Positions 2,072-30,361 of a DNA stretch of 64,000 nucleotides are shown here, piece after piece (the stretch's first letter is position 1; the number at the start of each line of letters is the position of its first letter). The translations under genes and the position numbers were made by a program. Origin of the DNA: Selaginella moellendorffii (Eukaryota > Plantae > Lycopodiophyta); assembly GCF_000143415.4 (NCBI RefSeq), contig NW_003314274.1, positions 1,901,149 to 1,965,148 on the forward strand. The letters run 5' to 3'. The notes under the pieces are model-generated. The model searched no databases, was not told where the DNA came from, and saw only the letters and a list, made by a program, of their open reading frames with translations.

Positions 2072-3560
2072 ATGTTTCGTGTAGGGTTGCAAGTGGCCTC
2101 CAGATCTTTCTCGTCCGCGGCACCTGCTAAGGTAAGCTAGAAAAGATTTTAAAAGTTTCTCACGGGCTCTATGATCAAACCCAGAAGCTCAAGGTTGTAG
2201 GAGTTTTCTACAAAGGAGGAGAGCATGCTGCCAAAAACCCCAAATTCATTGGGAATGTTGAGAATTGCCTGGGAATTCGGCAGTGGCTCGAGGATCAGGG
2301 CCATGACTACATTGTGACTGATGACAAAGAGGGCCCAAGTTGTGGTAGGCTAATTTTTTTGTTATAACATTTCTCGGAGCACATAGCGACATTTTGATTC
2401 TGTTTTTGGTTTTGGCTAGAGCTGGAGAAACACATCCCAGACATGGATGTGCTAATCACCACACCATTCCATCCCGGCTACATGACTGCCGAGCGGATCC
2501 AAAAGGCCAAAAACCTCAAGCTAGCACTCACTGCAGGGATTGGCTCTGACCACATTGACTTGACGGCTGCCTCCAAGGCTGGCATCACAGTCGCAGAAGT
2601 CACAGGTAGCTGACTGGGCTTTTCGACTCTGACCCAAACCATCAAACACGGTCTTTGCATTGACGATCTCCCAGGGTCAAATGTGGTCTCGGTTGCGGAG
2701 GACCAGCTCATGCGTGTCTTGATCCTTTTGCGCAACTATCAGAATGGGTGGACCCAAGTCAACGCTGGCGGCTGGGACGTTGCAGAGATCGTTTCAAAGG
2801 CCTACGATGTGCAAGGCAAAACCATTGGCAGTGTGGGAGCTGGAAGAATTGGGTACCATTTGCTCAAGCGTCTCAAGGTATTACTTTTAACGAAGTTTTA
2901 AGGCTCGCCACCTTTGTTACATCCATGCAGGCGTTCGATTGCAACCTTTTGTATTACGATCGGGTGGCCATGCCCAGTGACAGGGAGAAAGAGACTGGGG
3001 CGACGCGCGAGGCCGACTTGGACACAATGCTGGCCAAGTGTGACGCGGTGGTGATGAATGTGCCGCTCACTGAGAAAACCAGGTAATGATATATGCTGAA
3101 AGAAATGATCATACATTAGTTTTCTGACATTTGTGACATTTGTGACAGGGGATTCTTCAACAAGGACCGCATAAGCAAAATGAAGAGAGGTGCGGTTTTA
3201 GTGAACAATGCGAGAGGAGCCCTCATGGAAGCAAATGCGGTGGCGGAAGCGTGTAAATCTGGACACCTTGGAGGTCTCTCTTTTCTTCTATTCTTCTGCT
3301 GTGATTTTGTTTGATCTTGGGAACGTGATCTAGGCTACGGTGGCGATGTTTGGTACCCGCAGCCTCCTCCGAAAGATCACCCATGGCGATCCATGCCAAA
3401 CAACGCAATGACTCCTCACGTCTCTGGATCGACGCTCGACGCCCAGGCTCGCTACTCGGCCGGCGTCAAGGAGATGCTCCGCCGCTACTTTGTTAACGAG
3501 GAATTCCCTGCGGATTATTACATTGTCAAAGACGGCAAGATCGCACCCCAGTACTTATAA
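2072..3560 (+). CDS. FDH: NAD-dependent formate dehydrogenase, mitochondrial (multi-exon)
   Basis: Transit-like [20 protein letters not shown], then [11 protein letters not shown]...DDKEGP, ITTPFHP, AGIGSDH, Rossmann [13 protein letters not shown] (NAD-type Asp), NNARG and [14 protein letters not shown]...TPHVSG. Short GT-AG introns; TAA at 3558-3560. Confidence 0.95.
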
Positions 3561-3808
3561 ATTCTCAAGTGAGTTCTCAAATAATGCAAAAACAAATAAT
3601 AATTATAATAAGATATTATTATAATTATGAATTCTTATATTTAAATTTAAATTAGTATAAATAAACAGCCTTATAACAAAATAGTCATACTTAAACCTCG
3701 GAATATCTGTTCAACAGAAAATGTGTCCTAGAATATGCTCGTGGTGTTTTAGACTGGCTATTCTTTCCCGGGCAACCGCTGGAAAGAGGGCCAGGGCGCC
3801 CCGCGGCT

Positions 3809-28954: not shown

Positions 28955-30361
28955 TTACTCGATTTCCATTCCTTGAATGAAATCGTCCTCGTCAGTGTCA
29001 GCCTCATTGTCAAGGCTTTCATCAGCTGCTAGTTTGCTAAGAACAAGGGAAAAAAAACCGAAAGAAATCACGAGAGGAAAAATATGGTAAAGAAAAACTT
29101 TACCTCACGCTTTGGCAGCTGAAGTAAAGCACGCGTTTTAGCTTCTTGTTGTAGAAGAAGTAATTGAAGGACCATCTACACAATCTCCCACTCGCTATAA
29201 TCTATCAGCCGCAAAAACAACCGCAAGTTACTCACATCATGCCACCGTCGTTGAAAGGCCCGACTTGAAACTCTGGTGAGAAACTGTATATGTCACAGTC
29301 CTTGATGTCTATCACCTGGAGAAAGAAATGAATGAAATGTATAAAACACCTAGTGCGCAAGAGCTGCGTACCTCGTCGACTACTTCCCAGATAGCATCGA
29401 TGAGAAGAGAACTATTTCCTAGCTCCGAAGCCCAAACCTGGCAGAGTTTTCACTTTCTTAGTCATAAACAAACTTCCAGTAAGATACAGAAAAGCAAAAC
29501 ACTACCCGAGTCGCCTCTAACAGATGATAACCGATGCTCTCCTTCACACCAAGAGGATTTTCTTTCGAGAAATGGTGCGCACGCAGAGTACTGGGCTCCC
29601 AGAGAGTATTAGAAGGAGATCAAAATGAGGAAAAAACGAAAGAACCACCACCACGTCTACGGATAAAAAAATGGAAATGGAGAGACTTGAACTCTCAAGC
29701 CCCTCACGGAGCAACGGCATTCACCGTTTGTCAACATTGGACATCACTTCCAGAAAGTATAGAGGAAAGGTCGGGTTGCTAAAAGCCACTGTTGTACCCG
29801 GAAAAAACTGGTTACCTGAAATCGTAGTCTGGATACATATGAGACAGCGTCAGTATGAGATGAATCAGCGTCCTCCGACTAAAGAAAAACCAAGAAAAAC
29901 GTAAGCAAGAAAGAAAGAAAGCAAGGAGAGTTGCAATTAAAGTGTGTACCTCGACAAGCTAGAGAGGGGGCCAACAGGCGAGGAGGAAAGGTTTTGCGGT
30001 GACATTTCAAGGGAGTCAAGAACCTGAAACAAAAGGAAGACAAAAATCTCGCATAGTTCTAAGAAAATGTGAGCCAAGATATCACGACTTACTTCTTGCT
30101 CTATGCTGCGAGAGAGCTTCTTGTCCGTGCCAGCAAGCTTGCCTGTGCAATAGAAAGCTTTCTGTCATTTTGATCCTTTGTGGAAGTCAAACTTACAGGA
30201 GTAAGCTTCAAGAACCCCTTTGAGACGACAATCCCCAAGATCCAAATTGCTTAGAAATCCATTTATCCTGCCCGTGGGAGAACTGCTCAGCGCAAGAGCC
30301 TAGCTAGAATCTAGTAGCAAGAGAAGTACCTTGTGAAAGGTGTGTATTCGAGGAACTTCAT
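28955..30361 (-). CDS. MAF1: MAF1, repressor of RNA polymerase III transcription (multi-exon)
   Basis: MKFLEYTPF..., [16 protein letters not shown] (box A), [22 protein letters not shown] (box B), acidic tail [26 protein letters not shown] at 28955-28957. Confidence 0.93.
29672..29751 (-). ncRNA. tRNA-like (cloverleaf) structure inside MAF1 intron 29591-29815
   Basis: GGAAGTG-AT-GTC(CAATGTT)GAC-A-AACGG(TGAATG)CCGTT-GCTCC(GTGA)GGGGC-TT-GAGAG(TTCAAGT)CTCTC-CATTTCC-A, then TTTTTTT at 29665-29671. All five stems pair; B-box GTTCAAGTC; anticodon and D loops are non-canonical. Confidence 0.85.

Follow-up and report, generated by a model that had tools for sequence, protein, structure and literature searches.

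The MAF1 gene of Selaginella moellendorffii carries, in sense orientation within its one long intron, a tRNA-like cloverleaf of 80 nt with a short hairpin just upstream of it. From the comparison of sequences and folds, the hairpin and the cloverleaf are one two-part intronic module across the land plants sampled, and the cloverleaf is best read as an element which was lodged in the MAF1 intron before these lineages diverged. The land plants began to diverge more than 450 million years ago. RNA polymerase III (Pol III) has its universal brake in MAF1, the control of which is, to our knowledge, understood almost wholly via phosphorylation. The analysis was done on a stretch of 64,000 nt of the S. 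moellendorffii genome (the window), and the positions of the features are collected in Table 1.

Table 1. Positions of the features of the MAF1 module, in the window unless a locus name is given.
Feature	Position	Strand	Remarks
MAF1 coding region	28955..30361	minus	10 exons, 224 aa; Pfam PF09174 on the NCBI record P0215
Host intron, 225 nt, phase 2	29591..29815	minus	between the ...YPDYDF exon and the (S)TLRAHHF exon
Shortened hairpin, outer stem CGGGT/ACCCG	29770..29802	minus	21 nt 5′ of the cloverleaf; counterpart of the ‘MAF1 motif’
tRNA-like cloverleaf, 80 nt (CPIR-1 orthologue, by description)	29672..29751	minus, sense to MAF1	fold, model R1 and alignment with 11 other land-plant copies
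A58 of the T loop (last A of GUUCAA)	29687	minus	G in the RNA contigs of two studies, A in both genome haplotypes and a DNA run
T7 run	29665..29671	minus	directly 3′ of the cloverleaf; Selaginella-specific
Marchantia element copies	L002:2405-2484, 2589-2668, 3589-3668; L003:2405-2484, 2589-2668		third copy 1 kb downstream, in one assembly

The MAF1 proteins were reached from the open reading frame of a 33-aa exon, and the genomic loci of the orthologues were then fetched. The protein spliced from the window is identical in 223 of 224 residues to the MAF1 of S. moellendorffii at NCBI (protein record P0215). The transcript data are assembled contigs of three runs from three studies, a form of data in which RNA ends, strand and mismatch rates are out of reach; the contigs lack all nine introns, with joints at GT-AG, and the runs are therefore taken as RNA. 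The gene model given by these spliced contigs has eight introns of 54-72 nt and one of 225 nt, the joint of which is seen at 29590/29816, so the single long intron among short ones that an earlier note on this DNA had pointed out is present. Protein identity, the PF09174 domain and the RNA joints agree that the host of the cloverleaf is an intron of the MAF1 orthologue. At the Selaginella MAF1 locus (L006:2523-3408 and L006:1-750), the downstream neighbour is a class I aminoacyl-tRNA synthetase (PF00579) and the upstream neighbour is a 2OG-Fe(II) oxygenase.

All the stems which the earlier note had listed for a sense cloverleaf in this intron were found on the minus strand, read from 29751 to 29672. 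The acceptor stem has 7 bp (GGAAGTG/CATTTCC) and is followed by a discriminator A, the D arm is a 3-bp stem (GTC/GAC), and the anticodon stem has 5 bp (AACGG/CCGTT) with a loop of 6 nt. The long variable arm GCTCC(GTGA)GGGGC has 5 bp, and the T arm GAGAG-TTCAAGT-CTCTC is canonical. Folding by RNAfold gave -32.6 kcal/mol (z = -3.3) for the 96-nt stretch with the cloverleaf, and none of 200 shuffles was as stable; the fold of the whole 225-nt intron has z = 0, and the unusual stability is confined to the cloverleaf. No tRNA was called on the Selaginella element by ARAGORN at default settings or by Rfam at the gathering score, and RF00005 had no match to it even at E values up to 10. At 80% of its threshold ARAGORN recovered exactly the same cloverleaf, with a 2-base ‘anticodon’. 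The 6-nt anticodon loop and the missing GG of the D loop, both noted before, are borne out in the Selaginella copy and are peculiarities of it, as the GG is kept by most orthologues and several of them have 7-nt loops.

An element of this kind has been published before. Under the name CPIR-1, a tRNA-like sequence has been described from an intron of plant MAF1 (Akkuratov et al. 2014, Gene 548:81, PMID 25014137; PMC12218528); its RNAcentral entry is URS0000C5172F_2711. The earlier note had mentioned, as uncertain, a report of a tRNA-like structure in an Arabidopsis MAF1 intron. This was right, and with CPIR-1 published the claim of novelty falls. A hairpin called the ‘MAF1 motif’ has also been described from MAF1 introns of 105 flowering-plant species, in Magnoliophyta only (PMC12218528, RNA Biology 2025); it is listed there as ‘intron/CE’, with a conserved AG which in Hevea carries the annotation of an alternative 3′ splice site, and no link to nonsense-mediated decay was found for it. 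In the published descriptions, function is assigned neither to CPIR-1 nor to the MAF1 motif (PMC12218528), and our literature searches found no functional study of the plant MAF1 tRNA-like element.

Judged by its traits, the Selaginella cloverleaf is the orthologue of CPIR-1, matched by description and not by deposited sequence. It lies in the same gene and in the same kind of intron, it has the tRNA-like cloverleaf fold, it is homologous to the angiosperm copies, and a hairpin is placed a short distance upstream. Compared with CPIR-1, the Selaginella copy is the most degenerate one, with a short hairpin, loss of G18, a 6-nt loop, an extra base after the variable arm and the T7 run.

The same MAF1 intron bears the element in each of 10 named land plants and five metagenomic plant contigs, and it lies 64-270 nt 3′ of the YPDYDF exon in the orthologous introns. 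The loci which bear it include those of Diphasiastrum, Marchantia, Ceratodon, Sphagnum, Adiantum, Cryptomeria and Macleaya, along with a Ceratopteris paralogue and the second Selaginella haplotype. The sample was made up of a liverwort, mosses, lycophytes, ferns, a conifer and angiosperms together with two green algae, hornworts and streptophyte algae being outside it. In the MAF1 loci of the two algae, Chlamydomonas and Coccomyxa, there is neither an intron at the corresponding codon nor the element anywhere in the locus. The deep conservation surmised in the earlier note therefore holds in every land plant sampled, with the element at the orthologous intron position, and the orthologous introns, which that note had named as the place where its idea could fail, do contain it.

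The metagenomes were scanned with the invariant T-arm core as the pattern; 120 stretches matched, with 122 pattern matches in the loci, and two contigs in the scan, used for the pattern match only, are labelled human-gut metagenome. Five of the 120 stretches belong to plant MAF1 contigs, in each of which the YPDYDF exon is followed by the element after 130-270 nt. The remaining matches look like true tRNA genes of microbes, with many of type II (Leu or Ser) among them. The covariance model R1 was built from 12 copies of the element. It scores the plant copies at 79-104 bits and has only one match in the 64-kb window, the Selaginella element at 82.7 bits, and in a 203-Mb set of DNA contigs from the same species (run X3) the element is covered by one contig only, at 80% likeness. 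This one match and one contig rule out a dispersed SINE family. The dispersed SINE or tRNA pseudogene family, which the earlier note had named as a further way to be wrong, was thus looked for, and a single copy was found, with all the plant copies in MAF1.

In the element the other plants share 65-81% identity with Selaginella, and in the most conserved adjacent coding exon 65-80%; the rest of the intron cannot be aligned between lineages. The Selaginella element can be aligned with those of Macleaya and of four angiosperm-like contigs, and 42 columns of the alignment are invariant.

Some loci hold additional copies. In Marchantia the hairpin-plus-cloverleaf module is present in tandem within the intron at a spacing of 184 nt, as two or three identical copies depending on the assembly. 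One metagenomic angiosperm contig (L027) has an extra hairpin and a truncated cloverleaf upstream of the full module. In Ceratodon purpureus another intron of MAF1 contains a full-length 5S rRNA match in sense orientation (L004:3364-3484, plus strand; 99.3 bits, E 1e-20), with about 40 nt between its end and the 3′ splice site of the WSFNYFFYN exon, and with no T run after it; the Ceratodon MAF1 introns thus hold both tRNA-like and 5S-like sequences. A search of the MAF1 loci of Marchantia, Sphagnum, Adiantum, Cryptomeria, Macleaya and Selaginella gave no 5S match.

The pairing of the element was analyzed across its copies. The named structure has 95.8% of cells paired in the MAFFT alignment and 97.5% in the model alignment, against at most 56% when the partners were slid by 1-3 columns, and RNAalifold recovered the cloverleaf unaided. 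The T stem and the D stem show zero variation across copies, and the acceptor stem retains a G-U at its fifth pair. Within the cloverleaf, compensatory changes occur in the anticodon stem only, where three of the five pairs exchange A-U, G-C and G-U. The anticodon loop is 5-9 nt long and its sequences are unrelated between lineages. An additional pair between positions -1 and 73 lengthens the acceptor stem to 8 bp in the non-seed plants (liverwort, mosses, lycophytes and ferns), and this pair covaries (U-A, A-U and G-C; alignment A2, columns 4 and 89); it is missing in the conifer and the angiosperms. In the covariation shuffles, 3 to 56 of 500 attained the observed values. These statistics are modest because most paired columns never vary, and for the same reason the case rests on conservation and a few clear compensations. 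As read from these alignments, selection acts on RNA pairing, beyond promoter boxes alone.

The hairpin is found 18-37 nt upstream of the cloverleaf in 13 of 13 plant sequences. It is designed as an outer stem GGGT/ACCC, a small 5′ bulge and an inner stem ending in GGCA, and the outer stem together with the GGCAACCC block is conserved in all 13. Both the outer and the inner stem have compensatory changes. The hairpin carries a GGTAA block and, in many species, a CAG, and in Selaginella it is reduced to the outer stem. Its occurrence in liverwort, mosses, lycophytes, ferns and conifer extends it beyond the flowering plants.

The features for which tRNAs are recognised are kept in the element, namely the acceptor/T-arm minihelix, the GUUCRA T loop, the G(G) of the D loop and the long variable arm. 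A decoding tRNA was considered and rejected, since RF00005 stays below threshold (best orthologue score 21.9 bits against a gathering threshold of 29 bits), the loop varies in length as given above and no anticodon is conserved; relaxed ARAGORN calls of the anticodon vary by lineage among Lys, Phe, Ser, Thr and undetermined. Fold and T loop are kept and loop length and anticodon drift, in line with the earlier suggestion that the element is selected for shape and not for decoding.

With regard to origin, R1 also matches true bacterial tRNAs over their full length, with 24-44 bits, and many real tRNA-Leu/Ser genes of the metagenomes have the T arm plus CAT in exactly the same letters. RF04351, a plastid trnS-derived family, gave a weak antisense match. 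Because the long variable arm and the T arm are shared with tRNA-Leu/Ser, the latter letter for letter, we infer that the ancestor was probably a type-II (Ser/Leu-like) tRNA whose decoding has since been lost. The likeness to bacterial and organellar type-II tRNAs hints at an ancestor and not at membership, for the MAF1 element, unlike them, has no stable anticodon and is sub-threshold for RF00005.

In Selaginella the 225-nt MAF1 intron behaves unlike its neighbours in the RNA data. In each of the three RNA runs an unspliced contig of 282 nt (29564-29845) reads through this intron from one exon into the other, at depths of 7.5, 28.7 and 8.9 against 41, 83 and 68 for the spliced joint. No such unspliced contig was found for any other MAF1 intron in the three runs, and a purely intronic bin at 29444-29497 has zero depth; together these two results exclude DNA contamination. 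The retained intron reads AGG TAA, which is an immediate stop in frame. The selective retention is no more than suggestive, because the intron is about four times longer than its neighbours and its length may explain the retention.

The RNA contigs differ from the window at three sites, 29380, 29626 and 29687, the first two of which are alleles of the second reference haplotype. At 29687, which is A58 of the T loop, G was read in RNA runs X7 and X15, and A in RNA run X12, in both genome haplotypes and in DNA run X3. The tRNA m1A58 methyltransferase TRMT6/61A recognises GUUCRA T-loop-like hairpins, mRNAs included, and m1A causes misreading by reverse transcriptase (10.1101/202747). The A58-to-G reading may be the reverse-transcription signature of m1A58 or may come from an unsampled allele, and we give the two about equal weight. 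Like the TRMT6/61A sites in mRNAs, the MAF1 element has a GUUCAA T loop of 7 nt on a 5-bp stem, and the RNA-DNA difference falls on the methylatable A; the mRNA sites were mapped by a dedicated method in human cells, whereas the MAF1 case is one base in assembled contigs (10.1101/202747).

As to how this tRNA mimic may work, we put at about an even chance that it acts as RNA and in cis, in the unspliced MAF1 pre-mRNA, as a handle for tRNA-pathway proteins which ties MAF1 output to the load of that pathway. Our confidence in any single enzyme as the reader of the mimic is lower than in this general mode. The candidate readers would be modification enzymes, PRORP/RNase Z and other tRNA binders, and recognition by such proteins would slow or divert the splicing of the 225-nt intron. 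Because of its immediate stop, the retained form would halt translation at once, and in this way MAF1 output would be coupled to tRNA-pathway load. We infer both the recognition of the mimic by tRNA enzymes and any feedback on MAF1, and autoregulation of MAF1 by the mimic is a plausible hypothesis.

P5SM is a 5S rRNA mimic in the pre-mRNA of plant TFIIIA; it lies in a cassette exon, binds ribosomal protein L5 and is carried by unproductive TFIIIA isoforms. The two cases are alike in that a mimic of a Pol III product, conserved in land plants, is placed in the pre-mRNA of a Pol III regulator. In MAF1 the mimic-bearing intron, with its immediate stop codon, is selectively retained. They differ in that the MAF1 mimic is intronic and is seen with intron retention only, and in that the partner of P5SM is L5. 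The mascRNA of MALAT1 and the plant mitochondrial t-elements are tRNA-like structures in non-tRNA transcripts which are recognised by tRNA-processing enzymes. These are located at transcript ends and their cleavage has been demonstrated, whereas the MAF1 mimic is intronic and its cleavage is hypothetical.

The element could alternatively work at the level of DNA, where its B box and A-box-like D arm would bind TFIIIC, either as a nested Pol III gene or as an ‘extra TFIIIC’ site obstructing or insulating Pol II, and this we hold to be unlikely. The T arm GAGAGTTCAANTCTCTC is identical in 13 of 13 distinct plant copies, without covariation, and fits the B-box consensus at G53, T54, T55, C56, R57, A58 and C61; in the A-box-like D arm, A14 and G18 G19 are invariant in most copies. 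The conservation of the T and D stems exceeds what pairing requires, and so a promoter or TFIIIC role at the DNA level fits them too. The T7 run, which the earlier note had described after the discriminator, is present directly after the Selaginella element. It is specific to this lineage and is changed to TTTCTT in the S. moellendorffii haplotype of DNA run X3. Other plants have their first T4 3′ of the element at +14 to +228, or lack one within 300 nt. The conserved make-up of the MAF1 element does not include a Pol III terminator, and the Pol III route is weakened by a T7 run that is lineage-specific and broken in one haplotype. Moreover, a promoter role leaves the compensatory changes of the anticodon stem unexplained, and the RNA contigs connect the element to both flanking exons, so some of this RNA, at the least, is a Pol II transcript.

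It is also conceivable, though distinctly unlikely in our judgement, that RNase P and RNase Z excise the cloverleaf from the intron as a small RNA which would act elsewhere in trans, for example as a decoy for a tRNA-binding factor. The acceptor/T minihelix and the elbow are intact, conservation is tRNA-like everywhere but in the anticodon loop, and tRNA-like structures in Pol II transcripts do undergo processing (mascRNA, plant tRNA-snoRNA precursors). However, the 8-bp stem formed with the -1/73 pair in non-seed plants leaves no free discriminator and would be an atypical substrate for RNase P/Z, and the conserved upstream hairpin suggests a role inside the intron.

A purely structural splicing element, in which the hairpin and the cloverleaf set splice-site choice or a cassette exon with no tRNA machinery, is in our view very unlikely. 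It would agree with the ‘intron/CE’ listing and with the conserved AG as an alternative 3′ splice site in Hevea (PMC12218528). The GGTAA block of the hairpin and its CAG in many species would also suit it. Against it, no alternative joint was found inside the 225-nt intron in the three Selaginella RNA runs, and an invariant GUUCRA T loop with a D-loop GG, kept for more than 450 million years, is more than a generic structure would call for.

A neutral relic, be it a tRNA pseudogene, a tRNA-derived SINE or a chance fold, would suit the silence of default tRNA detectors on the Selaginella element but keeps next to no probability, being refuted by the orthologous position in every land plant sampled, by the single copy (one in the window, one covering contig in the 203-Mb set, 5/5 metagenomic plant copies in MAF1) and by the conservation of the element beside flanking intron that cannot be aligned.

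The preferred reading, that of an RNA handle in cis in the MAF1 pre-mRNA, can be carried further, and we offer the extension tentatively, as possible but doubtful: the module may be a land-plant-wide sensor of spare tRNA-maturation capacity which gives homeostatic feedback on Pol III. When few competing pre-tRNAs are present, enzymes would modify or cut the mimic and productive splicing of MAF1 would be held back. MAF1 would then go down and Pol III output would go up, and the A58-to-G reading would be the first molecular trace of such sensing.

The following points are new beyond the published CPIR-1: the hairpin is present in all the land-plant lineages sampled, compensatory changes within the cloverleaf are confined to the anticodon stem, the T7 run is Selaginella-specific, the 225-nt intron alone is retained in the RNA contigs, and the one RNA-DNA difference left over by the known alleles falls on A58. 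These additions are modest but useful, and by them a published curiosity becomes experimentally addressable in Marchantia or Arabidopsis. On this evidence MAF1, the brake on Pol III, has held a mimic of the main Pol III product since before the sampled land-plant lineages split, and the mimic points to a second, RNA-based layer of MAF1 control.
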